A stretch of DNA of 64,000 bases, from NCBI GenBank assembly GCA_026770705.1, contig JANJGN010000646.1:124001-188000 (forward strand), in the 5' to 3' direction. Below the pieces are notes generated by a model that did no database searches, was not told the origin of the DNA, and saw nothing but the letters and a program-made list of their open reading frames with translations. Shown here piece by piece: positions 746 through 27,520 of the stretch (positions are counted from its first letter, which is position 1; the number at the start of each line of letters is the position of its first letter). The position numbers and the translations under genes were made by a program. This DNA comes from Isurus oxyrinchus. Taxonomy: Eukaryota.

Positions 746-1042
746 ATTTCACAGATAAACCCACGATATTCCCTGCTGAAATTATTGCAGGAAAGCGTGT
801 GGATGTAAGCTGCACCTTCAACACAACGTGCAATGGAACAGCAGCACCTGTCTTAACCTGGGACACTCCCACTGACGTACCTGGATCAGTCTCAAACACT
901 GTAACTCAGCATGGTGTCACTCTGACCTATACTTCTGTTCTGACCCTGATCCCATCACTCAAACACCACGGACACACTCTCAGCTGCAGAGTGAGATATC
1001 CATCTGTTTCATCGGAGCGGACCCTCGTACTAACTGTGCAAG
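746..1042 (+). CDS. Locus 1 Siglec-like C2-set Ig exon 1 (DFTDKPTIFPAEIIAGKRVDVSCTFNTTCNG...LTW...LSCRVRYPSVSSERTLVLTVQ)
   Basis: ttag acceptor, g|gtaag donor, phase 1-1, 297 nt; Ig C-W-C pattern plus the extra BC-loop Cys typical of Siglec domain 2. Confidence 0.92.
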
Positions 1043-1164
1043 GTAAGAACGGACACCCTTCCATCTACATTAGCTAGAAAGCTCTACATAGTACACTGCA
1101 AGATCCCACAACTGCATTGTGTTTAGCAACAAATCAATAGTCTTTAACTGATACAAATTCGCCT

Positions 1165-1660
1165 CTGACACTGCAGCAGTCCCTAAATACTGAATCTCCA
1201 ACACTGCAGCACTCCCTCAGTTCTGAACCTTCGATAGTGCAGCACTCCCTCAGTACTGACTCTTCAACAGTGCAGTGCTCCCTCAGTACTGGCCCTCCCA
1301 CACTGCAGCACCCCCCGAGTTCTGACCCTCCAACAGTGCAGCACCCCCTCTGGACTGACCATCAGACAGTGCAGCTGTCCCTATGTACTGAACCTCTGAC
1401 AGTACAGCACTCCCTCAGTACTGACTCTCTGACAGTGCAGCACTCCCTCAGTACTTACCCACCAACAGTACAGCACTCCCTCAGTAATGACCCTCTGACA
1501 GTGCCGCACTCCCTCAGCACTGAACCTCTGACGGTGCAGTGCTCCCTCAGTACTGACTCTCTGACAGTGCAGCACTCCCTCAGTACTGACCCACTGACAG
1601 TGCAACACTCCCTCAGTACTGACCCTCTGACAGTGCAGCACTCCCTCAGTACTGAACTGA
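1165..1660. repeat. 33-bp minisatellite (cagtgcagcactccctcagtactgaccctctga)
   Basis: Tandem copies; same family at 9890-10100, 24670-25265, 28960-30680, 42790-43040, 49030-49325, 51310-51585, 57360-57470 and 59515-59735; explains the TVQHSLSTDPL pseudo-ORFs. Confidence 0.95.
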
Positions 1661-1786
1661 AGTCTCTGCCTGGATTACGGGCTTTGTGAAAAAGAACCTA
1701 CATTGAGATCATACCTTTCACATTCTAAGTGTCTTTCAAAGTGCTTCACAGTCAGTGTAACTTAATTGATGTTTATTTGTTTATAG

Positions 1787-2068
1787 ATGCACCACAGAAT
1801 CTCTCAATTAATTTTCTTGATATGATTAACGCTTCATCGATCAATATAATTGAGGGGAATTCTGCAGTGATAATCTGCTCTGTCGAGAGCTTCCCAGCTT
1901 CTAACCTGACGTGGCGACATCTTAATGTCCCAATGAACAGAACAAGTTCCAACAATGAGCTGTGGTTGGTGATTCCTCACGTTACATCCAGGGACACTGG
2001 AGACTATCAGTGTGTGGCAGAGAATGAACATGGAGCAGTGGAGGGATTCATAAACATCACTGTGGAAC
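1787..2068 (+). CDS. Locus 1 C2/I-set Ig exon 2 (DAPQNLSI...ICSVESFPASNLTW...DTGDYQCVAENEHG...ITVE)
   Basis: atag acceptor, c|gtgagt donor, phase 1-1; C..P...W and DxGxYxC motifs. Confidence 0.92.
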
Positions 2069-2105
2069 GTGAGTTACACAGAATTGAACGTTCTCTTATT
2101 ATTAG

Positions 2106-3135
2106 CTCATGGGATGTGAGTATTGTTGACAAGGCCAGAAATTATTGCCCATCTGTAACTGCCCCTTGAGAAGGTGGTGGTGAGCTGCCTTCTTTAACCA
2201 CTGCAGTCCATGTGGTGTAGGTACACCCACAGTGCTGTTAGGGAGGGAGTTCCAGGATTTTGACCCAGCGACGGTGAAGGAACGGCCGATATAGTTCCAA
2301 GTCCCAGGGCAGACCACCACCTTAAGTTCGCCTCCAAGTCACACACCTCACTGACTTGGAACTGTCTTGGTGGAAGAGGTTAAGGGTTTGGAAGGTGCTG
2401 TCGAAGGAGCCTTGGTGAGTTGCTGCAGCGCATCTTGTACATGGTGCACACTGCTGCCATTGTGTGCCAGTGGTGGAGGGTATGAATGTTTATGCTGGTG
2501 GCTGGGCTGTCGATCAAACAAGCTGCTCCTGGATGGTGTCGAGCTTCTTGAGTGTTGTTGGAGCTGCACTCATCCAGCCAAGTGGAGATTATTCCATCAC
2601 ACTCCTGACTTGTGCCTTGTCCGATGGTGGACAGGCTTTGGGGGGTCAGGAGTTGAATTACTCACTGCAGAGTTCCCAGCCTCTTACCCGCTCTTGTAGC
2701 CACATTATTTCCTGTTGCTGGGTTGTTGCCAGGGCCAATAGCCTTTGCTGTATCCAGTATCATCAGCTGATTCCTGATGTCACGTGGAGTCAATCGAATT
2801 GTCTGAAAGCTGACATCTGTGATGCTGGGACCCTCTGGAAGAGGCCGAGATGGATCATCCACTCAGCACTTCTGGCTGAACATGGTTGCCAATGCTTCAG
2901 CCTTGTCGTTTGCACTGATGTGCTGAGCTCCCCCATCATTAAGGATGGGGATATTTGTGGAACATCCTCCTCCTGTTAGATCTTTATTGTCCATCACCAT
3001 TCATGACTGGATGTGGCAGGACTGCAGAGCTTAGATCTGACCCGTTGGTTGTGGGATCGCTTTGCTCTGTCTATAGCATGTTGTTTCCGCTGTTTGGTGT
3101 GTATGTAGTCCTGTGTGTCACCTCAGCAGCTTGGC
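2106..3135 (-). mobile_element. LINE (CR1-group) 3' fragment with internal deletions
   Basis: Minus-strand RT-tail peptides (SFTVAGSKSWNSLP, IRLTPRDIRNQL..LDTAKAIGP). Confidence 0.7.
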
Positions 3136-3332
3136 ACCTCTGTTATATGTGAATCCTCCTTATAGAAACCTGCATGTACATGGATATTATCAATAAATAT
3201 TACATAGATAAATGTTATTTGTATAGACCTTTCATGCATAGACAATATCACTTCACAAGTTCAGAATTACTACATGTACATAGGGAACCATTCTCAAACT
3301 GTACCGGAGTCATTCATTGGCTGATTTTACAG

Positions 3333-3429
3333 GGCGAGATTCCAATGAATGGAAAGCAGGATTGCTTGGAGCTGGAATCTGTTTGAGTGTTGGACTGAGT
3401 GGATTCTTCATCTTCAAGTGTGTGAGAAA
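3333..3429 (+). CDS. Locus 1 transmembrane exon (RRDSNEWKAGLLGAGICLSVGLSGFFIFKCVRK)
   Basis: ttttacag acceptor in phase 1 with the preceding exon; 20-aa uncharged hydrophobic stretch then a basic stop-transfer; aa|gtaagt donor (phase 2). Not in the ORF track. Confidence 0.85.
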
Positions 3430-3744
3430 GTAAGTGTGAAGGTTTAATTGGTTGTTTTTGAAAATGTTTTCTTCAAACTTCTCTCCTTATAGAAAGAACT
3501 TGCATTTCTATAGCACCTTTTACAATCCAAAATCCTTCGCAGTCCCTGAAGAGTTTTGATGTTCACCTAGTGTTTAACATCTCATCCAACACTCACTGTT
3601 TCACAACTCAGTCCTGTAACTGGCAGTGTTGACCCGGACCATAAAATAGCTTCTGACCTCCTGAGTTTGTGAATGCTGCTATACAAATAAAAACCTTTCT
3701 TTTGTTAGTGAATGCAATCTCTTTCCATTTTCCATGATTCATTC

Positions 3745-3945
3745 ACTCTCTCTTATCGCCACTAATGCACGCCTTCTCATTCTCTCTCTCATTCACTCCC
3801 TCTCTTATCTCCACTAATGCTCTCCTTCTCATTATCTCTCTCATTCCCTCTCTCTCCAATCTCCACTAATGCTCTCCTTCTAATTCTCTCTCTCATTCAC
3901 TCTCTCTCCTATCTCCACTAATGCTCTCCTTCTCATTCTCTCTCT
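3745..3945. repeat. ~51-bp CT-rich tandem repeat (about 4 copies)
   Basis: ccactaatgctctccttctcatt recurs. Confidence 0.85.
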
Positions 3946-4237
3946 CGTCCTCTTACACGTTGTTCAGTCTCTCACATTTTTAAGGAGTGCTGAGCAACAT
4001 CTGCTCCTTCAGAAGATCCACCTCAACACCTGGAGTGAGCAGTGAATTGAAACTCGCTCAACGACTGCTCAGCTTTACACAGGAATCACGTCACAGAGTC
4101 AGGACACAAAGGGTTAACTGTTTGCTTACAACACAACACTAAGGCCCTACATTTCAATGAAAGTGTTTTCACAATTGTTCCCCAATTCCTGATTTGACTC
4201 ACAGTGACACATCAACCCTTTCTCATTAAATACACAG

Positions 4238-4322
4238 AGGGATCAGCACAGGAAGAGGTCATTCAGCCCAAGCAGAGCGTGTGGGCAGTTCCTCCCCAGG
4301 CGAGCAGTCGGACAGGTCCTGG
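4238..4322 (+). CDS. Locus 1 putative cytoplasmic exon A (KGISTGRGHSAQAERVGSSSPGEQSDRSW)
   Basis: The only phase 2-to-0 exon I found linking the TM exon to 4834; cacag acceptor, tgg|gtaagt donor, open frame. Homologous to the 5'-UTR exons of loci 2 and 3. Confidence 0.55.
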
Positions 4323-4514
4323 GTAAGTAACAGAATGATTGGAATTCACTTCCACCACCAACACCGTCCTTTGTTGAGGTTGTGACTTTATAAAGACAGA
4401 TTCCAATGATTGATGCCTTTGAAAGATTTCTACTGATTATTGAGATCTGGGTGTGAGGCTCAAGTCTGTTGTACAGAACATCTTTCTGGTTAAATTGTGC
4501 AGACAGGTTACACA

Positions 4515-4765
4515 CAGTCTACGATTATATTCCCTCGGGTCTAGAAGATTAAGGAGGGATCTAACTGAGGGGTTCAAACTGATTAAACACTCGATAGGGT
4601 CGATAGAGAGAAGCTATTCCCTCGGGTGGGGGTGGGTGGTGGAGGTCGGGTGGAGTCCAGAACAAGGGGGCTGGAACTTCAGATTGGAGCCAGGCCATTC
4701 AGGGGTGATGTCAGGAAGCTCTTCTTCACACAAAGGGGAGTGGAAATCTGGAACTCTCTCCCCAA
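4515..4765 (+). mobile_element. CR1 LINE 3' fragment
   Basis: LYSLGSRRLRRDL and RKLFFTQRGVEIWNSLP motifs. Confidence 0.8.
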
Positions 4766-4833
4766 TAATCAAACCCAACACCGAATACACATCATGTTGA
4801 TTGTCACTCTGTCCATTTCCATCTCTATTACAG

Positions 4834-4938
4834 AAGAGAGGCAAGGGGAAAGCAGGAATCAAATCGACCCATCGTGTTGATGAACATCGAAGTCCTGTTT
4901 ATGAAAACTGTGAGCGTGGTTGGGCTTTGAGGAATCAG
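4834..4938 (+). CDS. Locus 1 cytoplasmic exon B (KRGKGKAGIKSTHRVDEHRSPVYENCERGWALRNQ)
   Basis: tattacag acceptor, cag|gtgagt donor, phase 0-0; tyrosine motif VYENC. Confidence 0.8.
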
Positions 4939-5070
4939 GTGAGTCACACACCACAGGATCCCCAGCCTCTCAGCTGCTCCAGTAGCCTGGTTATTGATAT
5001 GGCTGCTCCAGTCCTGTATCTGCAATGTTTTATACAGTCACTCCCAAACCCAACCAAACTCACACCCAAC

Positions 5071-5810
5071 ACCGTTCAGAATCAATAATCAAACCCCGTT
5101 CAGAATCAATAATCAAACCCCATTCAGTATCAATAATCAAACCCCATTCAGTATCAATAATCAAACCCCGTTCAGTATCAATAATCAAACCCCATTCAGA
5201 ATCAATAATCAAACCCCGTTCAGAATCAATAATCAAACCCCGTTCAGAATCAATAATCAAACCCCATTCAGAATCAATAATCAAAACCCATTCAATATCA
5301 ATAATCAAACCCCATTCAGTATCAATAATCAAACCCCGTTCAGAATCAGTATTCACACCCCGTTCAGTATCAATAATCAAACCGCATTCAGAATCAATAA
5401 TCAAACCCCATTCAGAATCAATAATCAAACCCTGTTCAGAATCAATAATCAAACCCCATTCAGTATCAATAATCAAACCCCGTTCAGTATCAATAATCAA
5501 ACCCCGTTCAGAATCAATAATCAAACCCCATTCAGTATCAATAATCAAACCCCGTTCAGAATCAATAATCAAACCCCTTTCAGTATCAATAATCAAACCC
5601 TGTTCAGAATCAATAATTAAACCCCGTTCAGTATCAATAATCAAACCCCCTTCATTATCAATAAACAAACCCGGTTCAGTATCAATAATCAAACCCCATT
5701 CAGAATCAATAATCAAACCGCGTTCAGAATCAATATTCAAACCGCGTTCAGAATCAATAATCAAACCCTGTTCAGAATCAATAATCAAACCCTGTTCAGT
5801 ATCAATAATT
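5071..5810. repeat. 24-bp minisatellite (aatcaaaccccgttcagaatcaat), ~30 copies, intronic
   Basis: Tandem copies between the two tyrosine-motif exons. Confidence 0.95.
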
Positions 5811-5907
5811 AATGTATCTATTGTGGGTGGAATTTTCGATTTGGATCAATAATACTAAACACTGATCACTCTGATTGTCACTCTGATCATTTCTGTTTCT
5901 ATTACAG

Positions 5908-6024
5908 AAGAAAGATGAGAAGGATCTGGAAATGAAATCTATCCGCGGAGTCAATCCTGATACAGATGATGATCTTTACGCAAACTGTGATTTTGCCAAG
6001 GATTCTGTTTATGGGAATTTATAA
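5908..6024 (+). CDS. Locus 1 terminal cytoplasmic exon (KKDEKDLEMKSIRGVNPDTDDDLYANCDFAKDSVYGNL*) with ITIM-like motif
   Basis: tattacag acceptor, phase 0, ends TAA at 6022-6024; SVYGNL fits the ITIM consensus (S/I/V/L)xYxx(L/V/I). Confidence 0.82.
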   Translation, partial: KKDEKDLEMKSIRGVNPDTDDDLYANCDFAKDSVYGNL

Positions 6025-7142
6025 ACTGAGCAAGAATGAGACACACACAGTGTGGGGAGAATACAGAACGGGAGAATCATTCAAAACTCCAATTTACCTT
6101 CCTAATATCCACAGGAACTCACTCCCAGGAAATAGATTTAAACCTCTTGTTACAATCTGATGGAATTTCTTCGGAATGATCTATCCAGGATGATTGTCTG
6201 TGGGTTTCAATTCGAACATCCTCCTTCAGAATTGTCCCTCACTGTTGGAAACATCCTTCTCTCCATTCTGATTGTAAATGTCTTTAGATATCATTCGATG
6301 ATGTACCAGGACAGAACGGACAAATTCAATCCCGTGTCCGTGATTATGAGTTAATTTTCATTCTGTTATTCACCTTCCTGTCTGTCAGTGTTTACAGAAT
6401 ATTCATCAGCCAGTGTAGACTTCAGGAAATGCAGGATCAGTGGATAATTGGAGCAGAGGAGATTGGCAAAATTTACTCAGCATTTTGTAATCAAATGTAT
6501 TTTCAGATATATATTTGGATTTTACACTTCATCGTTAAACAGCAAAACTAACAGCAATCCCAGAAACATGGAAACAATTTGTTTGGAGATTTGAGAAATT
6601 CTCTGCAGCTCAGAGGATAACAGATGTGCTACAGTGCCACTACTGGTGGGAGGACATCATTTCAGCGTGACATGTTTACATTGATGTTGCCAATGAACAT
6701 TGGAAATTATGATGTGAAAAATTGGTTGCAGGTTTACCTTCTTCAATATGTCATAGATGGATGAGACAGCTTTGATAACAGAATGAAATAGAGCTGCAAT
6801 AAACCACCATTTTAGTCTTTCACACTTGGAGAGTACAATTAGCATCCATTCTGAAGGCTGAGTGGATGGGTGGACTGTGCGATGTGTTACAGATCACAGA
6901 GACCAACATCCTTGATCCTGGATCTGCTCTATGTTTGATGAGATACTTGGATAAAAGATTGGGAAAATAAATAATCCTCCGGCCTTAACCTGTAACTGGT
7001 CTCCCCATCTGTCAATGTCCTGAGGACAGAATTGGGTTTGAGGTCCCAAATCAGACGCATACTTTGACTGCCCATTGAATAGGAACAGGAGGAGGCCATT
7101 CAGCCCCCTCGAACCTGCTACACAGGAACAAGAGAGCACCTG

Positions 7143-7324: not shown

Positions 7325-7364
7325 GAAGATTTATAACATCTGCCGTATTTATTTTTAATGAGAG

Positions 7365-8030: not shown

Positions 8031-8139
8031 AGCTTCTTGCATGTGAACAGTCGATGGCCCTTCAGCCACATTCTTGGCACGCAAAGGGTTAACAGTTTTC
8101 TAACTGTGCGAGGCAAAGAGATGCTTTCTAACTTGGTAC

Positions 8140-8284
8140 TAACCACTTCCTCATTTTGTCTCACAGTGACACATCAACCCTTTCTAATTAAACACACAGA
8201 GGGAGCAGCACAGGAAGAGGTCATTCAGCCCAAGCAGAGCGTGTGGGCAGTTCCTCCCCAGGCGAGCAGTCGGACAGGTCCTGG
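8140..8284 (+). promoter_or_regulatory. Locus 2 promoter/5'-UTR exon module 1 with PU.1/ETS-like site
   Basis: cacttcctcattt (AAATGAGGAAGTG on -) at 8144-8156; donor tgg|gtaagt at 8284/8285, ~410 bp upstream of a leader exon; module repeated at 10325 and 30900. Confidence 0.55.
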
Positions 8285-8727
8285 GTAAGTAACGGAACGA
8301 TTGGAATTCACTTCCACAACCAACACCGTCCTTTGTTGATGTTGTGACTTTATAAAGACAGATTCCAATGATTGATGCCTTTGAAAGATTTCTACTGATT
8401 ATTGAGATCTGGGTGTGAGGCTCAAGTCTGTTGTACAGAACATCTTTCTAGCTCAAGGGATGAGGGAAGTGCAGGGACATGAGCTTTGGGGTGTCCTGAG
8501 CAGGTAAAAGGTGATATAGAAATGCAAGTCCTTCATTGTTTTACTTTCTTAAAGCCTTATAACTCTCTGCAGAGCAACTATCATCCCACAGAGAATGAAA
8601 TTAGTCTGTGAAGACATTGTCTAAAAGCAGTTCCGATCTCTCGAGAGGTGTCGGACAAGAGGTGAGGTCTCGTTAATTCATTTCTCTTTCACAGCTTGAG
8701 AACCAATGAAATACCTGGGAGTGTACA

Positions 8728-8767
8728 ATGATCAGGAAATATTACTTCCTCCTGTCACTTCTCCAAG
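8728..8767 (+). CDS. Signal-peptide (leader) exon 1, MIRKYYFLLSLLQ (exon starts 8695)
   Basis: tttcacag acceptor, acaATG, g|gtaat donor in phase 1; joins V exons to give MIRKYYFLLSLLQVGLSQ-EWK. Confidence 0.75.
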
Positions 8768-9732: not shown

Positions 9733-10324
9733 AACATACAAAGTGCACCAATCAGATTGAATCAGATTAACCAATCAGCTGTGTTGAAGAGCAGACAGGA
9801 ATGTTAGGCTAATTAGTGATTCATGACGGTGATAATGGGGGGAGTTCTGAGGGCTCCTAATCCATTGTCCTGTCTTGTAAATCAGCACCTTAATACTGAC
9901 CCTCCAACAGTGCAGCACTCCCTCAGTACTGATCCTCCAACATTGCAGCACTCCCTGATTAATGTCCCTCTGACAGTGCAGCAATCCCTCAGTACTGACC
10001 CTCAAACAGTGGAGATCTCCCTCAGTACTGACCTTACAATAGTGAAACACTCGCTCAGTAATGACCATCCGACAGTGCAGCACTTGCTCAGTACTGACAC
10101 TGGGGAGTTTCAGTCTACTGTGTGGGGCAGACGTCCCCTGAATCGGGTCTTGAACCCCACAACGTTCTGACCCCCTGAATTTGGCTGTGAAACCCACTGA
10201 CCCAAAGGAGAAACTCCTGGTCAATGACTGTCCACCTGTGAGCAGAAATATCAACACAGGGACAGGACACAAAGGGTTAACAGTTTACCAGCATCTCAAA
10301 ACAGGAGCTGCTCTGTCACTTTGA

Positions 10325-10468
10325 TCCAACTTCCTCATTTTGTCTCACAGTGACACATCCACCCTTTCTAATTAAACACACAGAGGGAGCAGCACAGGAA
10401 GAGGTCATTCAGCCCAAGCAGAGTGTGTGGGCAGTTCCTCCCCAGGCGAGCAGTCGGACAGGTCCTGG
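10325..10468 (+). promoter_or_regulatory. Locus 2 promoter/5'-UTR exon module 2 (canonical donor mutated gtaagt>ttaagt)
   Basis: Near-identical to 8140-8284; ETS core acttcctcattt retained. Confidence 0.5.
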
Positions 10469-10918
10469 TTAAGTAACGGAACGATTGGAATTCACTTCCA
10501 CCACCAACACCATCCTTTGTTGATGTTGTGACTTTATAAAGACAGATTCCAATGATTGATGCCTTTGAAAGATTTCTACTGATTATTAAGATCAGGGTGT
10601 GAGGCTCAGGTCTGTTGTACAGAACATCTTTCTAGCTCAAAGGATGAGGGAAGAGCAGGGACATGAGCTTTGGGACATCCTGAGGTGGTGAAAGGTGCTA
10701 TAGAAATGCAAGTCCTTCACTGATTTATTTTTTTACAGCTTTTTAACTCTCTGCAGAGCACCTATCATCCCACAGAGAACCAAATTAGTCTGTGAAGACA
10801 TTGTCTAAAAGCAGTTCTGATCTCTTGAGAGCTGTCGGACAAGAGGTGAGGTCTCATTAACTCCTTTCTCTTTCACAGTTTAAGAGTCAGAAGCTAAAGG
10901 CATATCTGGGAGTGGACA

Positions 10919-10958
10919 ATGGTTGGGAAATCTTACTTCCTCCTGTCACTTCTCCAAG
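10919..10958 (+). CDS. Signal-peptide (leader) exon 2, MVGKSYFLLSLLQ (exon starts 10879)
   Basis: Paralog of 8695-8767 with intact acceptor, ATG and phase-1 donor. Confidence 0.75.
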
Positions 10959-14800: not shown

Positions 14801-15250
14801 CATGAGGGATCCGTCTGCTCCCCAGCTCTTTACTTGAGCTCTTTCCCATCACTGTGTCTTCAAAGGTTTCCTGAGCAGTCAGTACACTGTGATTTCAACC
14901 ATCTCTGATGCTGTGTCTCTGTTGTGGTCTGACCAAAGCGTCGAAGCATGACTCATGTCATCTAGCTCGATCTAAGGTTGTTCACCACGTCATACCTGTA
15001 CTGAATCTTGCTGCCTGAATGTTTGGCCACCGCTGATCACCATGTTGTGTTTTTATAATGATATAAAGGCACCAGCCACTGATACGGAATTGGGTAAATA
15101 CATTGTGGGTTCAGTTATTTAGAATAGGGACATGAGAACAGATATACAAGGATAGAAAGCTGGGAGACACCTGCAGCCAAAGTGTGTGAGCTGTGTTCTG
15201 CTCACAGGCCAAAGTGAAACTTGGACTGGATGGTGTTATCATCCCAGCTG
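11890..15250 (-). mobile_element. Degenerate Ty3/Gypsy LTR retrotransposon (gag, protease and integrase remnants, PBS, LTR)
   Basis: Protease KIDTGASANI (~13960); gag CCHC knuckles (~14500-14660); integrase-like remnants (SPHYPRSNS/IHTVKSLILKC); PBS TGGTGATCAGCGGTGG at 15025-15042 next to an LTR end. Confidence 0.8.
12494..12810 (+). mobile_element. tRNA-derived SINE nested in the Gypsy remnant (relatives at ~43200-43330 and ~54850-55185 on -)
   Basis: A-box-like tggtgtagtgg and B-box-like ggttcaaatcc. Confidence 0.65.
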
Positions 15251-15251
15251 A

Positions 15252-16621
15252 TGTTGCTACTGGGCAAGTCAGATCCCAGGGTGGAGCTCAGCTTGATAGG
15301 TCCTAACTTTTATTTTTTATTTAGGAATGTGGAGTGCAGCTACTGAACAGAGTCACAGGAGTCATCTGATGAACTTCTAACAAAAGAATAAAACATTTAT
15401 TAAACTAGGAAAGACAAACTATATGACATTTCTCCTTCACCCAGACCTATACATTTACAGATATATACAGATTCATAAAGATCACGCAAGTTACAATAGC
15501 TATCTTATACTATCATGTTCACACTAAGTACACAGTCCATGTAAACCAATAGACGACCTGTGGTCAGGACACCACATTCTAAAATCAAGTGACAGAACCC
15601 ACTTGAAACAAATGCTATGTCTCCCTCCTCATCTGACCCCAGACGCTTGTTACACTGTGAGCCAACCAGTCACACTGAACTGAGATATCCATATGAGGGT
15701 TTCCAATCTCAAAGAGAGCCAAGTGCTCTCTTTGGAATCTTCTCCAACATGACACTTTCACTCAGACACCTTCCACAAGGGTCCACTTTCACTATTTCAA
15801 ACTCTCCTTCCCATGTTCCTGCCCCCTGGATCGCCACGTGCATTCAGCCTTCCTTCCACGCCCTGTCTCTCCAATGCTCAGCCGTGTCAATGGAACACCA
15901 GGCTTCACATGGCCGTAGTAATGAGTCACCAACCTGTGGTGTCTCCTAGGATCTTCTGGCTTCTCACAAGCCTATTTTGCTTTAGGCCTGTGTCCTGCTG
16001 CTTTCTCCCTTTAAGCTTGAAGCCTTCTTCTGCTCCTCACTCTTAACTTCACTTAACAGGGCCTTTTCCAGATTTGACTAGAAGGTTTTCTTGGGCCCTT
16101 TCTCCTGTTCCACTCGATAGTTTTGGCTTCATCTTTACTTTGGGACTGACTATCTGTCCCGCTCCTTTGCTGCTTCTCCTGGCAACTCCTTTCAACAGAA
16201 CTGAAAGTACTTTTCTGTTTTTCTCGGTCTCTGTGGGTCCTTCCCTCTGGATCACTGTTGCCAGGCAACAGCACAGTTTTTTACACCTTGTGTTTGTTTT
16301 GACTTCCTGCAAGAGTCTTAAAACCTCAAAGGAATGCTGGCTTATTTTTAGCTCAAGCTCCCCCTTTTCTCAACACCCAAATACAGAAATACAAATTAAA
16401 ATTAAACATAAATATATACCTTAAAGATACACCTTATGCCTAACACACAGAAATACACATAGAACTTACTTAAGCCAACCCCAGTTCCTAAAAATCACAT
16501 GACACACTTCCCCTCGAGTGATGTCATGCTGCTATCCCTGAAAGGCATATTATAACAGTGTTATCACTTGGCAGGTGATGTGTGCCAGGCAGACCAAGTC
16601 CCTGAGAGAAACCTGGTCACA
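15252..16621. mobile_element. Putative solo-LTR or unclassified interspersed repeat (copy at ~34918-36275)
   Basis: TG...CA ends, no coding capacity, present in both duplicates; classification uncertain. Confidence 0.3.
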
Positions 16622-17181
16622 CTATCATAATGATTTTTCAATTTGTATTTATTTTGAGATGTGTGCACTGAATTCAGAAGCAATGACTCCACCAAACTTT
16701 CAGAGATTTAAAACAATAAATTAAGATATTTGTCATCAAAATGAAAGATTTCAAGCACATACATAAGACTACAATGACTGCTATAATAACTCCTAAAATT
16801 CCTAATTAACCTGACTCCCAGTTACACTCCATTTAAGGCAACAGACCAAAATTATATGTTAGATTTAAAACAAATTCAACAAGTTAACACAATGCCCTGG
16901 ACAGTGGAATTCCAAATGGATTTTCCCCAACTTCAGTTCTGTTGGATAGCAGGCTTGTGCACAAACAGGGTCCTGAGGACCATGAGCCAATGTAGAATGA
17001 ACTTGTCCACTCCTGTGTCCAGGATTCTCTTCCATCCGTTATGAAACATTGGGGAGTTCCATGTGTGTCCTGTAGATGGTCCACACTGCAGCCACTGTGC
17101 CCCAGTGATGGAGGGGGTGGATATCGAGTCTAGTGGATCTACAAACCATCCAGAGTTAAATATTGATATTTCTCTCCCCAG

Positions 17182-17550
17182 TTGGACTGTCACAAGAGTG
17201 GAAAGGTGACACTCCACGAGAGGTGACAGCACAGAAAGGTTCGTGTGTACAGATTCCATGTAATTACAATTACCCATCACATTTGTTAGAGAAAACACGT
17301 GTTGGAATCTGGAAAATGAGAAGGGACAAATGGCATACATCGTCTATAGCCTTTCACTCCAAGGATCACAGTCACGAGTTACCACGGTTCCACCATCGGA
17401 CCCGGCTGTCTGGAGACCTGAAAGATGGTGACTGTTCCCTGACTATAAACAACATCAGACGGGAAGATGCAGGACCTTATTTTTTCACGATAAAATTTGG
17501 CAATGGTCCGAGCCATAACTATTACCCTGTAACCCAGCTTCACGTTTCTG
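17182..17550 (+). CDS. Locus 2 Siglec-type V-set exon V-A (lacks the essential F-strand Arg)
   Basis: ccccag acceptor, g|gtaagt donor, 369 nt open; Siglec hallmarks GSCVQIPC, RTRLSGDLKDGDCSL, DAGPYFF (B-E intra-sheet disulfide, no F-strand Cys); YFFT in place of YFFR. Confidence 0.9.
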
Positions 17551-17816
17551 GTAAGTGCTGTGTTATAATTACTCAACAATTCACATTCAACACTCAATGG
17601 GAAATAATAGTGTTTGATTTGCTTGTTTTTTGGCCGTGTTAACCAGCGTCACTATTTTTAATGATTTGTCTATTTCTGCTCCCAGATCCATGAGCTTATT
17701 GTGTGTGATTGAATCCACATCATAGCTGTAACGTAAACCGAGCTGAGGGGTGATGACACCTCCCCGCTGAGTGAAGTATCTCCTCCCCACTACACCTTCC
17801 ACCCCTCACACTGTCC

Positions 17817-18790
17817 GTGTAAACCCCTGTCCCATCTCCAGCCTCTCTTTCCCCTCCAAAGTCCTTGAACGTGTTTCCATCTCCCGAATCCGTTCCCATC
17901 TTTCCCGGAACTCCATGTTTGAATCCCTCCAATCAGGTTCCCACCCCAGCCACTGTGCTGAAACAGCTCTTATCAAGGTCACAAATGGCATCCTGTGTGA
18001 CTTTGACAAAGGTCAACTTTCCCTCCTCGTCCTTCTCGATCTGTCTGCAGCCTTTGACCCGCTCGACCACACCATCCTCCTCCAACACCTCTCCACTGTC
18101 GTCCAGCTGGGTGGGACTGCTCTCCCCTGGCTCCATTCTTATCCATCTCATCGTAGCCAGAGAATCACTTGCAATGGCTTTGCAGCATCATCTGAACAGT
18201 ATTAGTTTTCACCTGTCCACTGAGGATCCCCAGCTCTACCTCACCACCACCTCTCTCGACTCCTCCACTGCTGCTAAATTATCAGGCTGCTTATCCGACA
18301 TCCAGTACTGGATGGGCAGAAATTCCCTCCAATTAAATATTGGAAAGACTGAAGCCATTGTCTTCATTCCCCACTCCAAACTCTGTTCCCTCGCTACCAA
18401 CTCCATTCCTCTCCCTGGCAGCTCTCTGAGATTGAAGCCAATCTGTTCACAGCTTTGTTGTCCCATTTGATCCTGAGATGAGCTTCCGGCCTCATATCTG
18501 CGCCCTCACTAACACCGTCTATTTCCACCTCCGTAACATCGTACGACTTCACCCTGTCTCAGCTCATCTGCTGCTGAAACCCTCATCCACGCCTTCATTA
18601 CCTCCAGACTCGACTGTTCCAACACACGGTCTACACTCCATAAACTTGAGGCCATCCAAAACTGCTGACCACGTCCTTACTCACACCAAGTCCCATTCCC
18701 TTATCACCCGCTCTGCTCGATGACCGAGACTGGCTCCTGGTCAAGCAAAGTCTCAATGTCCAAATTTTCATCTTTGTTTCCTCACTATCT
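17817..18790 (+). mobile_element. L2-type LINE RT fragment (shorter copy at ~37480-38085)
   Basis: ETALIKVTN, LLDLSAAFD and LQLNIGKTE RT motifs. Confidence 0.85.
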
Positions 18791-19885
18791 CTGTAATCTC
18801 CTCCTCCTCCTCCGCCAGCCCCTACAACCCTCCCTATCTCTGTAACTTCTTTCAGTGACCAGAAACCACCCCTATCTCAGAACCTTCCTCCAGCTCCAAC
18901 AACCCTCCCTTTCTCTGCACCATTCTCCAGCCACTCCAACAAACCCTATCTCTAAACCCCCTTCCAGTCCCTACAGCAATCTCTATCTATGTATCCTCCT
19001 CCAGTCCCTACAACCCTCCCTATCTCTATAAACTCCAGTCCCTACAGCCCTCCCTATCTCTATAATCTCCTCCAGTACCTACATCCCTCCCTATTTCTAT
19101 AACCTCCTCCAATCCCTACAGACCTCCCTATGTCTATAACCTCCCCCAGTCCTTACAGCCCTCCCTATCTCTATAACCTCCTCCAGTACCTACATCCCTC
19201 CCTATCTCTATAACCTCCTACAGTTCCTACAGCCCTCCCTATCTCTATAACCTCCCCCAGTCCTTATAGCACTCTTTCTCACTGTAACCTCCTCCAATCC
19301 CTACAGCCCTCCCTATCTCGATAACCTCCTCCAGTCCCTACATCCCTCCCTATCTTGATAACCTCCTCCAGTACCTACAGCATTCTCTATCTCTGTAACT
19401 TCCTCCAGCCACAACAAACGTCCCTATCTCTGTAACCCAATCCTGTACCTACAAACCCCCTATCTCCATAACATTTCCCATTCCCGTCCACCCTCCCTAT
19501 CTCTGTTACTATCTTTTGCCCCTAAAGCCTCCCTTTCACTGTAAATTTCTCCAGTCCCTACAAACCCTCTGTCTCTGTAACCTACTCAGGCCCCTAAAGC
19601 CTCCCTTATCCTTTAACGTCCAACAGTCCCTACAATCCCCTTTTCGCTCAAAGCTCCTCAAGACCCAACAATGTTCCCTAACTCTGTAACCCCATCCTGC
19701 CCCAACAACCCTTCCTTTCACTGTAAGTTCCGCCAGACCCTCCAACCTTCCCTATCTCTGTAACCCCATCCTGCCCCTACAACCCTCCCTGGCTCTGTAA
19801 ACTCCTACAGCCCCTCCAATCTTTCCTACCTCTGTAGCCTCACTACAGCCTCTGTACAAACTACAGCCCCTACAACCCCCCGAGA
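18790..19885. repeat. ~38-bp minisatellite (cctacaaccctccctatctctgtaacctcctccagcc)
   Basis: Tandem degenerate copies at the L2 3' end; shorter arrays at 38085-38460 and 55335-55700. Confidence 0.9.
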
Positions 19886-20739
19886 TCACTGCGCTCCTCC
19901 AATTCCGGAATCTTGACCATCACCGGATGCTATCGCTCCAAAATTGGCGGCCGTGCCTTCTGTTGCCTGGGACCCTAAGCTCTGGAATTCCCACCCAAAT
20001 CCTCTCCCTATCTCTCTCTCTCTCTGTCTCTTTGTCTCTTTCTCTCTATCTCTCCATAACACCGACCTCTTTTGGTCAGCTGTCGCTAATATCTCCACAT
20101 GTGTCTGGGTGACATACTTTGTTTTATGACGCTCCTGTGTAGCACCTTGGGGTGATTTGTCATGTTAAAGTTGTTGTGTAAATATAAGTTGTTGCCCTTT
20201 GACCCTCGACCCCAGATCGAGTCTTATTTTTGAGGGAATGTACAACCTCCTTAGATTTCTGACCAAAATGTCATTTGATTATTTTTATTGAGCGAATGCC
20301 AAGCCCCAATACCGAGCGAGAGCCTCCTCATTTGCTGAGTTTAAGGTGATGAGTCAGCCCCTTAGTCCGTAGCGGGGATTCTCCTGGGTAATGTGCAGCC
20401 TTGTTTGTGTCTCTCCACAAGCGCATGAGGGGTTTGTACAGAGGCTGCAGCGCTGGAGGGGGTCTGCACAGGGGTCCTGGCCTGTCCTGAGCTGGTTTTA
20501 GCAAGGACCACTCTGGCCTTGGCAGCTGAAAGCCAGCCATTGGACAGACGGGGCCTGTCACAAGGAGCCTGTTAGTCACTCCCCCCAGTGTCTCCTGTGC
20601 TCGGATCCAGACCATGTTGGCTGGTGGATCTGGCTCAGGAAGGGTCGTCCCCATGGGACCCCCAGATGGAAGGTGGGTCGAGCGGGTCAGTCACTTGCAT
20701 GTTTATTCTGCAGCTTTAATATTTTAAGAAGGTAAGAAT

Positions 20740-21500
20740 GTAGGAACATAAGAAATAGGGACAGGAGCAGGCCATTCGGCCCCTCGAGCCTGCTCTCGCT
20801 GATCTGGTTGTGGCCTTAACTCCATTTTCCTGCCTGTCCCCCAAACCCTTGACTCCCTTGTCGATCAAAAACCTGCCTCACTCAGCCTTGAGTTTATTCA
20901 ATGGCCCAGTCTCCACTGCTCTCTGGGGAAGGGAATTCCACAGGCTAGCGCCCCTCTGAGAGAGGAAATTCCTCCTCATCTCAGTCTTAAATGGGAAAGC
21001 CCTCATTCCGAAACTGTGCTCCCTGGTTCTAGATTCCCCCACGAGGGGGAAACATCCTCCCAGCATCCACCCTGTCAAGCCCCCTCGGAATCGGATATGT
21101 TTCAATAAGGTCACCACTCATTCTTCTAAACTCCAATGGATACAGGCCCAACCTGCTCAACATTTCCTCACAGGACAAACCCTTTAATCCCAGGAATCAG
21201 CCCAGTGAAGTTTCTCTGAACTGCCTGTACACAATGATCCTGTTACAATCTCACCAACGCCCTGTGCAGCTGTTGCAAGACTTCCCTCCTTTTATACTCC
21301 ATCCCTTTGCAATAAAGGCCAACATTCCACTTGCCTTCCTCATTCCGTGGTGTTCCTGAATGCTGACTTTCTGTGATTCATGTACCAGGACACCCAGATC
21401 CCTCTGTACTGCATTCTGCAGCCTCTCTCCATTTTAATAATATTCTGTTTTACTATTCTTCCTGCCAGAATAATTTGTTGCCATTCTCCTCAGTATTGAC
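20740..21500 (-). mobile_element. CR1 LINE 3' fragment (copy at ~39330-40090)
   Basis: FKTEMRRNFLSQR..SLWNSLP and QRDLGVLV motifs on -. Confidence 0.8.
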
Positions 21501-21589
21501 CATCCTCCAAATTCAGCCACATCTGTAAATATCGGGTTCAGTGGATCCACAAACCATCCAGAGTTAAATATTGATATTTCTCTCCCCAG

Positions 21590-21955
21590 CTGAACCCTCA
21601 CAAGAGTGGAAAGGTGACACTCCACGAGAGGTGACAGCTCAGAAAGGTTCGTGTGTACAGATTCCATGTCATTACAGTTATCCATTGTGTCTGGAAAACC
21701 AACCGCGAGGTGGAGTCTGGTTTAATAATGAGGAATGGAGAACATCGTCTATAGCCTTTCACTCCAAGGATCACAGTCATGAGTTACCACGTTTCCACCA
21801 TCGGACCCGGCTGTCTGGAGACCTGAAAGATGGCGACTGTTCCCTGATTATAAACAACATCAGATGGGGAGATGCAGGACCTTATTTTTTCAGAATAGAA
21901 TTTGACAGCGGAAATAGATACAGCTACTATCCTGTAACCCAGCTTCATGTTTCTG
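21590..21955 (+). CDS. Locus 2 Siglec-type V-set exon V-B (essential Arg present, YFFRIE)
   Basis: Intact splice sites, 366 nt open, phase 1-1, same Siglec motifs. Confidence 0.92.
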
Positions 21956-22683
21956 GTAAGTGCTGTGTTATAATTACTCAACAATTCACATTCAACACTC
22001 AATGGGAAATAACACAAACTGTGCCGTTTACATATTAACACAAAACACAGCTTATTATAACACACTGTCTGATTCTCAATAACCTGGTGATAGCTTCCAG
22101 TTCAGTCCTAAAGCAACATCTAATACTCACTTTAATATCAATGATTAAATGTATTGACTGTGTCCATCAGTGTTATCAGGTTATCCACTCGCACCGATCT
22201 CTCTAATCCTGTCTCGAAGTCTGACATATCGATAGAAGAAATATTCACATTTCTATAGCACATTTCACCATCTCAGCATGGACCAAATCACTTCACAGCC
22301 AATGAGCTGATTCCTGAATTGTAGTTACTGTTGTAAAGTGGGAAACACAGCAGCCAATTTGTGCACAGCAATCTCCCACAAATTGCAAAGTAATAAATGG
22401 CCCAGATTGCTGAGGGACTGATGGGGTAGTGCACTCCAAACTCTGGTCTGCTCCACCACCCTCACCCACTATTATCAGTTCAAGTGTCTCGGAGTGAACG
22501 TGTATTAAGCTGAGAGACAGAAACACCAAAGTCTCAAAGCAGGAAATTCTCTCCTGATCGTTGTAACCTCTCAGTTCTGATATCATCCTTGTAAAAGTGC
22601 TTTCTCTTGTGGGACTGTGATTTCTATTTGAACTGATGCTTCACGTTATATTTCTCTAAAAGGATCCATTCTCTGTCTGTTAG

Positions 22684-22980
22684 ATTTCACAGATAAACCC
22701 ACGATATTCCCTGCTGAAATTATTGCAGGAAAGCGTGTGGATGTAAGCTGCACCTTCAACACAACGTGCAATGGAACAGCAGCACCTGTCTTAACCTGGG
22801 ACATTCCCACTGACGTACCTGGATCAGTCTCAAACACTGTAACTCAGCATGGTGTCACTCTGACCTATACTTCTGTTCTGACCCTGATCCCATCACTCAA
22901 ACACCACGGACACACTCTCAGCTGCAGAGTGAGATATCCATCTGTTTCATCGGAGCAGACCCTCGTACTAACTGTGCAAT
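22684..22980 (+). CDS. Locus 2 C2-set Ig exon 1
   Basis: Intact splice sites, 297 nt; about 3 nucleotide differences from 746-1042 by eye. Confidence 0.92.
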
Positions 22981-23274
22981 GTAAGTTGAGATATCCTTCA
23001 TTCTACATCAGCACTCCCTCAGCGCTGACCCTCTGACAGTGCAGCCTGTTCTCAGTGTCCACATTCTCATTCCTCTCAAAGTGCTTCACAGTCGATAGAA
23101 ATTAACTGATCTTTATTTGATTACTGCTGAATGAAGAGACAAGCTGTCTAAACTTTACACCTCGCACACATTATTTTCCATGGCAACACCTCCTCCAATC
23201 AGTGACCACTTGCCAACCAATCAGCACTCTCTTCCCATCAAGTATAAATTGTTGTTCACTTTCTGTTGGTAAAA

Positions 23275-23455
23275 CTGCGATCTGTCTGTTGAGTCCTGCC
23301 CTGACATCTGAATATCACAATGAACAGAACAAGTTCCAACAATGAGCTGTGGTTGGTGATTCCTTACGTTACATCCGGGGACACTGGAGACTATCAGTGT
23401 GTGGCAGAGAATGAACATGGACCAGTGGATGGGCTCATAACCATCACTGTGGAAC
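23275..23455 (+). pseudogene. Degenerate extra copy of C2 exon 2 (5' half disrupted)
   Basis: 3' half (MNRTSSNNELWLVIPYVTSGDTGDYQCVAENEHG...ITVE|gtgagt) retained; acceptor and 5' half replaced by unrelated sequence. Confidence 0.75.
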
Positions 23456-24282
23456 GTGAGTGTACACAGACTTCAACATCTCTCTCAGATTGAATCATGA
23501 CACAAACACACACAAATATACAGACCTAAATAGACACCTGCAGACACACAATCCCACATGTATGAGCACACACAATGACACACTCACAAACTAACACACT
23601 CAAACACATCTCCCCCGTGGGTTACCTGACCTCCATCAGTGCTGCATCGGAGAGTTGACGTAGATTCTGGGATTTGTGTTCCCATTCATATTTCTGGAAG
23701 AACATGGAAATTGCAAATTCTATTAGACACTCAAATGCACAGAGATACTTACAGATACTGATTGCCTCTCCAACTCTCTCTCTCCCTTGAAGAATCTTCT
23801 TCAAACCAAACCCTTTGACCAGGCATCTGTCCCAACTCCTCCTTCTGTGAATCTGTGTGAAATATTGTTTGAGTATCTGAGAGTAAGAGAGAGGTGGAGA
23901 GGTTTAGGAAGGGAATTCCTGTTGGTGAAAAGCTTACATCATGTTCCCACCTTTCCAGAGCCCATTTTGCACATGATGTCCAATGTCCCTGTTCATCATG
24001 GGGATTGCCTATGTAAACATCACGCTGTAGTTACACTCTCCTACCAGTGGTGGCACGGTAGCACTTAACCCTTGCATCTCCCAGATTTTCAAGCAATTTC
24101 ACTTCCCAATTTGCTACTACTCACCTCAACCACTCCCTGTGGGAGCGAGTTCCACATTCTCCCCTCTCTCTGGGTAAAGATTGGAACTGTTTATTAAGCG
24201 GGGGGTGTAAGTCCGTGGGGGAGTCCATCTCGATCCTGCCCGATTCGCACACAAGTCCGAGATGGATTTCCATCTTGCACTA

Positions 24283-24400
24283 AGAAAAGTGTTGACGTTT
24301 CGAGTCCTCATGACCTCAGTTCTGTCGAAGGGTCATGAGGACTCGAAACATCAACTCTTTTCTTCTCCCCCGATGCTGCCAGACCTGTTGAGTTATTCTT
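24283..24400. mobile_element. Core of the same palindromic element (~33-bp inverted arms)
   Basis: gttgacgtttcgagtcctcatgacc...ggtcatgaggactcgaaacatcaac. Confidence 0.65.
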
Positions 24401-24669
24401 AGCTGATGCTCGCTATCAATAACCAAGAGAGACCGACATTAGAACAAGCTGATTATTTATTGTAACAGAGGGCAGAGCACTAAATCCTTGCCTGCTCCCA
24501 CAGCCACCTCCAGCTCTAGACTTACAGTTAACCAGTGGCCCACACTGTCCAGTGATTGGTCAGTACTGTCACATGGTTTATCCACTTGTATTCTCTTAAA
24601 GGTACCTGGCACTCCACATTATCACAGGAGGCCTATAGTACACACATAACAGCATGTTTGCCTCCTCAG

Positions 24670-25265
24670 CACTGACCCTTCTACAGTGCAGCACTCCCTC
24701 ATTACTGACTCTCTAATAGTGTAATGATCCCTCAGTAGTGCTCCTCCAACATTGCACTGGTCAATCAGAACTGACGCTCTGACTGTGCAGTTTTACCTCA
24801 GCAGTAACCCTCCTACAGTGCAGTGCTCCCACAGTACTGTCCCTCCTACAGTGCAGCACTCCCTCAGGACTGACCCTCTGACAGTGCAGCACTCCCTCAG
24901 TACTGAACATCTGGCAGTGCAGCACACTCTCAGTACTGACTCTCTGACAGTGCAGCGCTCCCACAGTACTGTCCCTCCTACAGTGCAGCGCTCCCTGTCC
25001 CTCCTACAGTGCAGCACTCCCTCAGAAGCGAACATTTGACAGTGCAGCACTCCTTCAATACTGACCCTCCAACAGTGCAGATCTCCCTCACTACTGACCC
25101 TCCGACAGTGCAGCACCCCCTTAGGACTGACCCTCTGACAGTGCAGCACTCCCTCAGTACTGAACCTCTGACAGTGCAGCACTCCCTCAGTACTGACTCT
25201 CTGACAGTGCAGCACTCCCTCAGTACTGACCCTCTGACAGTGCAGCACGCCCTCAATACTGAACT
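24670..25265. repeat. 33-bp minisatellite array
   Basis: Tandem copies of the same unit. Confidence 0.95.
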
Positions 25266-25394
25266 GAAGTGTCTGCCTGGATTACGGGCTATGTGGTGAA
25301 AGAACCTACATTGACATCACACCTTTCACATTCTCAGTGTCTTTCAAAGTGCTTCACAGTCAGTGTAAGTTAACTGATCTGTATTTGTTTTTAG

Positions 25395-25676
25395 ACGCAC
25401 CACGGAATCTGTCAATTACTTCTCCAGATATGATTAACGCTTCATCGATCAATATAATTGAGGGGAATTCTGCAGTGATAATCTGCTCTGTCGAGAGCTC
25501 CCCAGCTTCTAACCTGACGTGGCGACATCTTAATGTCCCAATGAACAGAACAAGTTCCAACAATAAGCTGTGGTTGGTGATTCCTCACGTTACATCCAGG
25601 GACACTGGAGAATATCAGTGTGTGGCAGAGAATGAACATGGAGCAGTGGAGGGGTTCTTAACCATTACTGTGGAAT
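25395..25676 (+). CDS. Locus 2 C2/I-set Ig exon 2 (YAPRNLSI...DTGEYQCVAENEHG...ITVE)
   Basis: ttag acceptor, t|gtgagt donor, open frame, close paralog of 1787-2068. Confidence 0.92.
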
Positions 25677-27380
25677 GTGAGTGTACACAGACTTTAATAT
25701 TTCTCTCATCTCCGAACACATATACTCAGATGCTCTCCCACACACACACACAAGCACTCACAAATGTACAGACCCAAACTGCATGCACACACACAATCCC
25801 ACACTCATGAGCACACAGAAAGACACACTCACACACAAACACAGTAGTACACACGCCCCTGTGAGTTACCTGACCTCCCTCAGTACTGCACTGAAGAGTT
25901 CTCCTGGATTCTGGGATATGTGTTCCCATTCATATTTATCGAAGAATATCCAAATTACAAAGTCTATTCCAGAAACTCACATGCACAAAGATTCCAACTG
26001 ATACTCCCCACCTCTCCGTGTATCTCTCTCCTCCTTTAAAAAGCTTCCTAATCCCTAACTCTTGCCTGTCCTAACTCCTCCTTATAATGCCCTGTGTCAA
26101 ATTTTTTGTGTATCTGAGAGAAAGGGAGAGATAAGGAAGTTTAGGAAGGGATATCCTGTTCGTGAAGAGCTTACTTCTTTTTCTCACCTTTCCAGTGTTC
26201 AGTTTTGCCATCATGTCCAATGACCCTGTTTATAATGGGGGCAACATATGTAAACGTCACACTGTCTTTACATCCTCCCACCAGTGATGGCACTGTGGTG
26301 CTTAAGCTTGCACCTCCCAGCTTTTCAGCCAACTTCACTTCACAATTTGCAACACATGCTGTAAGTTCATCGAAATTAACTTATGTATCAAATGGTAGAT
26401 TTGATAATACAGTTTATTGAAAGGTTCATCCGCGCTCTGGGAAGGGTTTGCACTCTCCAGGAAGCAGGAATAGGCTGGATGTTGGGGAGTTCATCTTTTC
26501 CCAGAGAGTAGGGATCCTCGGGAATGTGCTGTCAGTGGGTGTGGTGGTTGCTGTCTCTCTGTTGCCTTCAAGAGGGATCTGGAGTGGTTACTAACTGGGG
26601 GAGAGATCATAGAAGCGGAGAATGATACAGCACAGGAGGAGGCCATTCAGCCCATTGTGCCTGTGCCAGGTCTTTCAATGTTCTATCCAATCAGATCCAC
26701 TAACCACTACTCCACTTTGCCCCCATCATCCTCCTTCAAGTGTTTATCCAATTTCCCTTTTGAAAGTTCCTATTGAATCTGCTTCCACCGCCCTTTCAGG
26801 CAGCACCTTCCAGATCACAACAACTCGCTCTGTCAAAACAAATTCTCCTCATCTCCCCCTCCGGTTTGTCAATCTGTGTCCCTCTGGTTACCGACCCTCC
26901 TGCCCCTTAAATACATCGATACTGTTCACCTCAACCACTCCCTGTGGGAGCGAGTTCCACATTCTCCCCTCTCTCTGGGTAAAGATTGGACCTGTTTATT
27001 AAGCGGGGGGTGTAAGTCCGTGGGGGAGTCCATCTCGATCTTGCCCGATTCGCACACGCGTCCGAGATGGATTTCTACCCTGCACTAAACGTTTCCAGAA
27101 TTTTCTACAGCACAATCCTGTACACAGCGATGGAGAGAAACATTGGACAGGGAGTCCAACAGCACAATGATCCATTCTCACCAATGTTCCACGCTAAGGG
27201 GAAAGTTCCGATTGTCCACTCTTAGAGTGTTTACAATGAAAACATTCATTCCACATTGAATCCCAGTGGATGGGTCAATATTACAGCAAATGTTGCAGTG
27301 ATATGAAGCTTGATTGTTCAGCCAGAGTGAGAGATTGAAAGCGGAGAGTCAGTGATGATTTCTTTCTGTGTGTTCTCTAG

Positions 27381-27520
27381 ACAGTGGAGGAGAGATTCTG
27401 CACGTGATCCTGATCCTGGGAATACGAGCTGTGATATTCCTTGTGGCTGTGGTTATCACTATCGCTGGAGTCTGTGTCTGGGAGAGACAAACAGTGCAAG
27501 GAAGTCGACAGATTGTTTGA
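27381..27520 (+). CDS. Locus 2 TM plus short-tail exon, activating type (YSGGEILHVILILGIRAVIFLVAVVITIAGVCVWERQTVQGSRQIV*)
   Basis: ctctag acceptor in phase 1; long hydrophobic segment with Arg (CGA 27425-27427); stop at 27518-27520; donor at 27542/27543. This frame is not in the ORF track. Confidence 0.85.

Follow-up and report, generated by a model that had tools for sequence, protein, structure and literature searches.

Does a shark genome hold, side by side, Siglec receptors that resemble one another outside the cell and differ at their signalling ends? The question is raised by 64,000 nucleotides of Isurus oxyrinchus DNA (GenBank assembly GCA_026770705.1, contig JANJGN010000646.1, positions 124,001 to 188,000 of the forward strand), here called the window and numbered from its first letter, in which a first-pass annotation made from the letters had proposed paired inhibitory and activating Siglec-like receptors with near-identical C2 domains between 746 and 27520. 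The answer favoured here is that the window covers part of an elasmobranch cluster of CD33-like Siglec genes, arranged in tandem and all read from the + strand, in which a gene with an uncharged transmembrane (TM) segment and a tyrosine-motif tail (locus 1) stands next to one with an intramembrane arginine (locus 2). A pair of this kind with opposed signalling is the best explanation of the whole, with a probability of roughly 0.6. Exon coordinates are on the + strand throughout, and homology searches were run exon by exon.

Assignment to the Siglec family starts from the inner V-set exon of locus 2 (21590–21955). It matches the Pfam V-set (1e-10) and Ig_CD22 (9e-9) profiles, and its top 18 matches among solved structures are all Siglecs: Siglec-5 is best (1e-13), followed by CD33, sialoadhesin, Siglec-8, -10 and -7, MAG and Siglec-15, with PDB E-values of similar size (1e-13 for Siglec-5 and CD33, 1.5e-12 for sialoadhesin, 4e-11 for MAG). 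In Siglecs an essential F-strand arginine (YFFR.E) binds the sialic acid carboxylate; the inner V exon keeps it (YFFRIEF), its YFFRIE aligning to YFFRVE of Siglec-5. Siglecs also share a cysteine pattern with a B–E intrasheet pair and with an interdomain bond formed by extra cysteines, one in the B strand and one in the first C2 domain. At the level of sequence the inner V exon has this pattern, including the B–E pair (GSCVQIPC and DCSLII, with no cysteine in the F strand), and the first C2 exon, C2a, supplies the extra cysteine in SCTFNTTC, which aligns with VSCMVPDNC of MAG domain 2. Pfam, the structure matches and the aligned arginine agree with the family first proposed, and every sequence criterion places these genes among the Siglecs.

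The nearest relatives are elasmobranch proteins. No mammalian sequence is among the best 150 matches of a full-library search with the V exon, and in a V-domain tree that holds no mammalian rows the V exons of the window lie within an elasmobranch-only clade of 42 rows. The proteins of this clade are NCBI models named CD33-like, Siglec-5, -8, -12, -13, -14, -15 or MAG-like, from the sharks Carcharodon carcharias, Cetorhinus maximus, Mustelus asterias, Scyliorhinus canicula, S. torazame and Chiloscyllium punctatum and from the further genera Hypanus, Hemitrygon, Pristis, Leucoraja, Rhinoraja, Mobula and Narcine. The highest amino acid identity, 89–98%, is to C. carcharias models (CD33-like or Siglec-12); by these matches the window belongs to a shark near the great white, most likely a lamniform, and the early guess of a cartilaginous fish was correct. 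The window is vertebrate genomic DNA of ~45% GC with satellite arrays and fragments of long interspersed nuclear element (LINE) reverse transcriptase; masked runs of N occupy 58.6–62.7 kb.

Locus 1 (746–6024) consists of C2 exons followed by an uncharged TM exon and a tyrosine-motif tail, and as read from these exons would be a type I receptor whose leader and V exons lie upstream of the window start. Its C2a exon (746–1042; 297 nt, AG/GT borders, phase 1 at both ends) carries the Siglec-type extra cysteine and matches Pfam C2-set_2, MAG domain 2 and the C2 domain of CD33. The second C2/I-set exon, C2b, is at 1787–2068 (Pfam Ig_3/I-set). The TM exon (3333–3429; donor AA/GTAAGT, phase 2) reads from 3333 as RDSNEWK-AGLLGAGICLSVGLSGFFIF-KCVRK, the helix AGLLGAGICLSVGLSGFFIF having no charged residue, and is 97% identical in amino acids to the TM of C. 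carcharias XP_041037180.1 (P0013). A cytoplasmic exon, cyA (GISTGRGHSAQAERVGSSSPGEQSDRSW; 4238–4322, phase 2 to 0), gives a 61% amino acid match to residues 264–299 of P0013, and with the internal acceptor at 4238, taken from P0013 homology, the tail exons are all in frame with the AA/GTAAGT donor at 3429. The tail continues with cy1 (4834–4938, phase 0/0), which encodes VYENC (4897–4911), and with the last coding exon (5908–6024), which encodes LYANC (5974–5988) and the C-terminal SVYGNL with its stop (6004–6024). Inclusion of the VYENC exon in mRNA is uncertain because P0013 has no counterpart to it; the exon at the equivalent position in P0007 has no detectable similarity to cy1. The motif pair of the last exon, D[IL]YAN[CW]-x7-[SA][IV]YGN[IL]-end, is kept in a carpet shark (P0007) and in stingray (P0056 and P0032, which are equal across the terminal motif residues). 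The predicted transcript structure of locus 1 is supported by homology to gene models. A 24-nt tandem array of ~30 copies (5068–5809) fills part of the last intron, between the VYENC and terminal exons.

Locus 2 begins farther upstream than first drawn. Loose ends of RNA contigs carry a leader sequence with exact matches at 8746–8767, 10937–10958 and 31512–31533; the first belongs to a leader (signal peptide) exon at 8728–8767 (MIRKYYFLLSLLQ, phase 1), whose leader is the same as in shark models P0013 and P0004, and the second to another copy at 10919–10958 (MVGKSYFLLSLLQ), both lying 5' of locus 2. These leader exons place the start of the gene near 8.7 or 10.9 kb, with two V exons included. 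The outer V-set exon (17182–17550) is intact, has its essential arginine replaced by threonine (YFFTIKF) and clusters in the V tree with domain 1 of two-V shark models. The inner V exon follows, and a contig loose end at 21589 is the end of a V exon spliced onto the V exon at 21590. Next come C2a (22684–22980; 98% amino acid identity to C. carcharias P0171), a relic consisting of the 3' half only of a C2b-type exon, with stops upstream (23303–23455), and an intact C2b exon (25395–25676) whose use in the Arg-TM transcript would be optional. The terminal exon (27381–27519) encodes SGGEILHVILILGIRAVIFLVAVVITIAGVCVW-ERQTVQGSRQIV-stop, with an intramembrane arginine (ILILGIRAVIF) followed by a 12-residue tyrosine-free tail.

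The endings of both genes are therefore as the first-pass annotation described them: the uncharged TM and the tail with VYENC, LYANC and SVYGNL in locus 1, the arginine-bearing TM (Arg-TM) and short tail at 27381–27519 in locus 2, and both TM frames absent from the track of open reading frames (at least 70 residues). The exons it named also stand, but its gene models were incomplete, lacking the leader and two V exons of locus 2 and the exon at 4238–4322 of locus 1.

Several smaller observations concern the exons of these two genes. An upstream ATG in another frame (MKYLGV..., 8706–8767) overlaps the leader exon, and C. carcharias isoform X2 (P0021) begins in this way; the annotation of that isoform may be based on an out-of-frame start. 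A reading of 23303–23455 as a complete exon whose 5' half has diverged was rejected, the upstream frames all being closed or not Ig-like. The Arg-TM exon was likewise rejected as a glycosylphosphatidylinositol (GPI) anchor signal, as a 12-residue polar tail of conserved length follows the helix. A strong donor (CTG/GTAAGT) lies at 27542/27543, 23 nt past the Arg-TM stop, and one X5 contig stops exactly there; no AATAAA or ATTAAA occurs within 1 kb after this donor, and a spliced 3' untranslated region is possible in locus 2. A 306-nt module recurs in copies 94–96% identical (4182–4487, 8143–8449, 10326–10633 and 30903–31209); the first contains the cytoplasmic exon at 4238–4322, the others lie ~280–580 nt 5' of each leader ATG, and the module is a leftover of the duplication unit or else an exon that has been reused.

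The extracellular exons of the two loci are most alike in C2a. In line with the first estimate, exactly 3 of their 297 nt are different (99.0% identity); two differences are non-synonymous, one falls in the split last codon and none is synonymous. The upstream introns have 31 mismatches in 735 aligned bases and 10 gap columns over 745 nt, and by Fisher's test (p=0.007) the C2a exon is more alike than this intron. Between the C2b exons there are 15 differences in 282 nt (94.7% identity), which alter 9 codons non-synonymously and 3 synonymously, so the description of the C2 domains as near-identical holds for C2a but not for C2b. The TM exons are unrelated, as had been claimed, with no similarity detectable between them in DNA or protein. 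Canonical, phase-compatible splice sites, the presence of both TM types in models from other sharks and the spliced Arg-TM exon are together more than chance would give.

The Arg-TM exon is spliced into RNA. Contigs from four public runs (X1, X5, X6 and X8) were aligned to 21580–27560, and their exact GT..AG joints indicate that spliced RNA is present in these runs. X1, X5 and X8 contain the GT..AG joint between the inner V and C2a exons as well as a joint 22978>27379, and X6 contains a joint 23455>27381. The joint 22978>27379 is consistent with a C2a exon that ends in G and is spliced to 27381; C2a ends in G in locus 1 and in the C. carcharias models, giving a junction codon GAC (Asp), and with the T that ends the exon in the window the codon would be one for Tyr, the residue found in S. 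canicula P0175. The half-C2b relic is joined in contigs to both 25397 and 27381. In X1 the contig depth of the bin holding the TM exon is ~10 times that of the intron flanking it upstream, and one X1 contig is identical to 27080–27389. At C2b positions 25425, 25426 and 25565 every X1 contig has another letter than the window, in two of the three cases that of locus 1, which indicates that these contigs come from a paralogue or allele. Splicing into the Arg-TM exon, one of the proposals to be checked, was thus seen in four runs, but, among the 15 of 107 joints listed, from C2a or from 23455 and not by the expected joint from the end of C2b.

Both kinds of ending are conserved in other sharks. 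The Arg-TM exon recurs with 77–91% amino acid identity in eight models from four other species and three shark orders: C. carcharias P0171, P0172 and P0174, S. canicula P0173 and P0175, S. torazame P0125 and P0006, and C. punctatum P0020. In all of them ILGIRA is invariant, the tail has the same length and the protein ends in ...SRQTV. P0171, named Siglec-12, shares with locus 2 98% of the amino acids of C2a and 91% of those of the Arg-TM exon. The C. carcharias models share a V-V-C2a-TM layout, and in the S. torazame and C. punctatum models C2b is joined to the TM exon. Some shark models have two to four V domains, and outer and inner V domains tend to cluster separately across species, with weak tree support.

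Under the reading preferred here, transcripts of locus 2 would run from a leader at 8.7 or 10.9 kb through the outer V exon (arginine lost), the inner V exon (arginine kept), C2a and an optional C2b to the Arg-TM exon. The arginine most likely pairs with the TM aspartate of an adaptor of DAP12 or FcR-gamma type carrying an ITAM (immunoreceptor tyrosine-based activation motif), which would make the receptor activating. In locus 1 a phosphorylated immunoreceptor tyrosine-based inhibitory motif (ITIM) would recruit SHP-type phosphatases and act as a brake, so that similar ligands could draw opposite signals from the two receptors. This mechanism is drawn by analogy with Siglec-5/14, Siglec-11/16, Siglec-15, activating KIR and LILR; literature searches on Siglecs of sharks and on DAP12 or FcR-gamma of cartilaginous fish yielded no specific result.

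A number of observations weigh against this reading, in its expression, its pairing and its signalling. All four runs are contigs labelled 'RNA?' by guess. The contigs that join C2a to the Arg-TM exon have a G at 22980, where the window reads T, and may therefore derive from an allele or paralogue; the joint 25676>27381 is not among the 15 joints listed of 107. Near-identity was seen in the stalk exon C2a, the V exon of locus 1 lying outside the window. The paired design first claimed is accordingly retained in its adjacent genes, very similar stalk exons, unrelated signalling ends and conserved arginine, but its near-identity is that of the stalk exon C2a. In the tail of locus 1, one of the three tyrosine motifs fits the ITIM consensus, all three have the Grb2-type form YxN, and the spacing of the last two (Yxx[C]-x7-YxxL) resembles that of an ITAM. 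The label 'inhibitory' is supported by one consensus ITIM, the C-terminal SVYGNL, but VYENC and LYANC are off consensus and the VYENC exon may be left out of the mRNA; inhibition is the likeliest reading of this tail, and not a safe one.

The tail observations are the basis of the strongest alternative, in which the genes are real but do not form a brake and accelerator: the tail of locus 1 would serve for docking or endocytosis, as a module of Grb2-type (YxN) or ITAM-like character, and the two receptors would be wired differently without opposing one another. VYENC and LYANC lack the hydrophobic residue or serine at -2 and the L, V or I at +3 that an ITIM requires, LYANC-x7-YGNL has ITAM-like spacing, and a tail of mammalian style (LLYAxx ... 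TEYAQI) is present in other sharks' paralogues and nowhere in the window. On the other hand, SVYGNL fits [S/I/V/L]xYxx[I/V/L], the C-terminal [SA][IV]YGN[IL] is kept in carpet shark and stingray, and as an ITAM the pair is non-canonical, with C or W rather than L or I at +3 of the first motif. On balance this alternative is unlikely, though it deserves to be taken seriously.

Less probable still is an Arg-TM receptor that signals without an ITAM adaptor, its arginine serving another partner or the control of retention and assembly, or the receptor acting as a short-tailed ligand decoy. The outer V exon without its arginine and the short isoform without C2b could be taken in this sense, and so could the dependence of adaptor choice on arginine position even among primate KIRs, in which Arg-bearing macaque KIRs use FcR-gamma and not DAP12 (PMC8102735). 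Against it, ILGIRA is invariant across three shark orders while the adjacent TM residues vary, the pattern expected of a specific intramembrane contact, and the 12-residue polar tail speaks against a GPI signal. The least probable alternative is that the locus 2 copy is decaying and that the spliced contigs come from intact paralogues of a very large family, since, although locus 2 has a half-exon relic at 23303–23455, a LINE insertion between its V exons and an outer V without arginine, the contigs deviate from the window at the C2a/TM joint and the three listed C2b positions, and the adjoining locus 3 has a stop and a frameshift, the coding exons of locus 2 are all open with intact splice sites and the X1 contig identical to 27080–27389 indicates that the locus 2 copy is present in X1, at least unspliced.

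The shark genes resemble the primate pairs Siglec-5/14 and Siglec-11/16 in being neighbouring Siglec genes whose extracellular exons are highly similar, one gene having an uncharged TM with a tyrosine-motif tail and the other a basic TM residue with a short tail, and in having an exon more alike than its flanking intron, which fits sequence homogenisation. They differ in that near-identity was seen in the stalk C2a, the V of locus 1 lying outside the window, in a tail made of YxN sites and one terminal ITIM instead of an ITIM and an ITIM-like motif, in the two V exons of the Arg form and in their elasmobranch lineage. Among C. carcharias models of the same family and exon types, P0171 is laid out as V-V-C2a-ArgTM and P0013 ('CD33-like') as V-C2a-TM1-cyA-cy2; these are automatic predictions from another species, none identical to the window, and no paper was found on them. 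Human Siglec-12 likewise places a tandem of V-set exons behind a single leader, and one of the two V-set exons has no essential arginine, which was lost in humans. In locus 2 it is the outer V that has lost the arginine (to threonine) and the inner that keeps it, and the gene ends in an Arg-TM rather than an ITIM tail; the two-V layout is common to several shark species. KIR, LILR and teleost NITR/LITR follow the same principle, with ectodomains that resemble one another and end in an ITIM tail or in a charged TM, but belong to other Ig families without the Siglec V-set signature.

The affinity of the pair to the CD33-related Siglecs is a separate matter. Fish genomes have been described as lacking CD33-related Siglecs, a statement based on teleosts (PMC7226832). 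The locus 1 tail does not have the CD33-related arrangement of a membrane-proximal LxYAxL ITIM and a distal TEYxEI, and no LLYAxx...TEYAQI tail was found in the window; tails of the form LLYANP/LLYINV ... TEYAQI are present in C. carcharias and Cetorhinus paralogues. Because some shark paralogues retain an LxYxx..TEYxxI tail, a large and fast-evolving elasmobranch Siglec family may share an ancestor with the mammalian CD33-related Siglecs, with pairing and multi-V heads being ancient and kept diverse through patchwork exchange in the loops that bind ligand. This is a tentative proposal, on the doubtful side; if true, it would overturn two textbook views, that CD33-type Siglecs are missing from fish and that the pairing of Siglecs arose recently, in mammals.

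No publication on paired Siglecs of sharks was found, the published paired activating and inhibitory Siglecs being from mammals only. An Arg-TM Siglec beside a tyrosine-tail Siglec in sharks would mean either that the layout is as old as jawed vertebrates or that it arose repeatedly, and either outcome informs how hosts counter pathogens that mimic sialic acid. The pair also supplies concrete constructs for adaptor tests in cartilaginous fish. Its value is limited in that both forms are already predicted by automatic annotation in several sharks.

Comparison of the window with itself reveals the tandem array. The segment 1–1047 is 95.8% identical to 21949–22985 and 95.4% to 40540–41573, and 14192–24117 recurs at 33063–42690 with 92–96% identity. 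A search for Ig exons found four V, three C2a, two intact C2b and two half-C2b relics, all on the + strand. Some of these belong to a third locus (31494–42031, +), a 92% duplicate of 14192–24117, with a leader (31494–31533), an outer V exon (36836–37213) in which the arginine is present (HFRIEF), an inner V exon (40178–40546) interrupted by TGA at 40456–40458, a C2a exon (41273–41568) with a 1-nt deletion and a half-C2b relic (41880–42031). DNA and protein searches found no extra copy of either TM or tail exon in the window, leaving locus 3 without a recognisable 3' end there. Its premature TGA, its frameshift and the lack of a TM exon within the window make it a probable pseudogene.

LINE-type reverse-transcriptase fragments lie at 17770–18470, 37430–38210 and 44890–45610 (the last on the - strand). 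The first two separate the outer V exon from the inner one, in locus 2 and locus 3 respectively, so the insertion is older than the duplication. A 33-nt satellite with several open frames (LSTDPLTVQHS...) occurs in introns and intergenic DNA throughout the cluster (1160–1660, 9890–10100, 24660–25265, 28960–30690, 42790–43040, 49020–49330, 51280–51590 and 59515–59740), and its presence inside the C2a–C2b introns may favour unequal exchange. The four V exons (17182–17550, 21590–21955, 36836–37213 and 40178–40546) are mosaics. In their flanking introns and C–C'' region the exon at 17182 pairs with that at 36836 and the exon at 21590 with that at 40178; in the F–G loop segment the pairing is reversed, 17182 going with 40178 (89%) and 21590 with 36836 (87%), a pattern that suggests patchwork exchange in the predicted ligand-contact loop.

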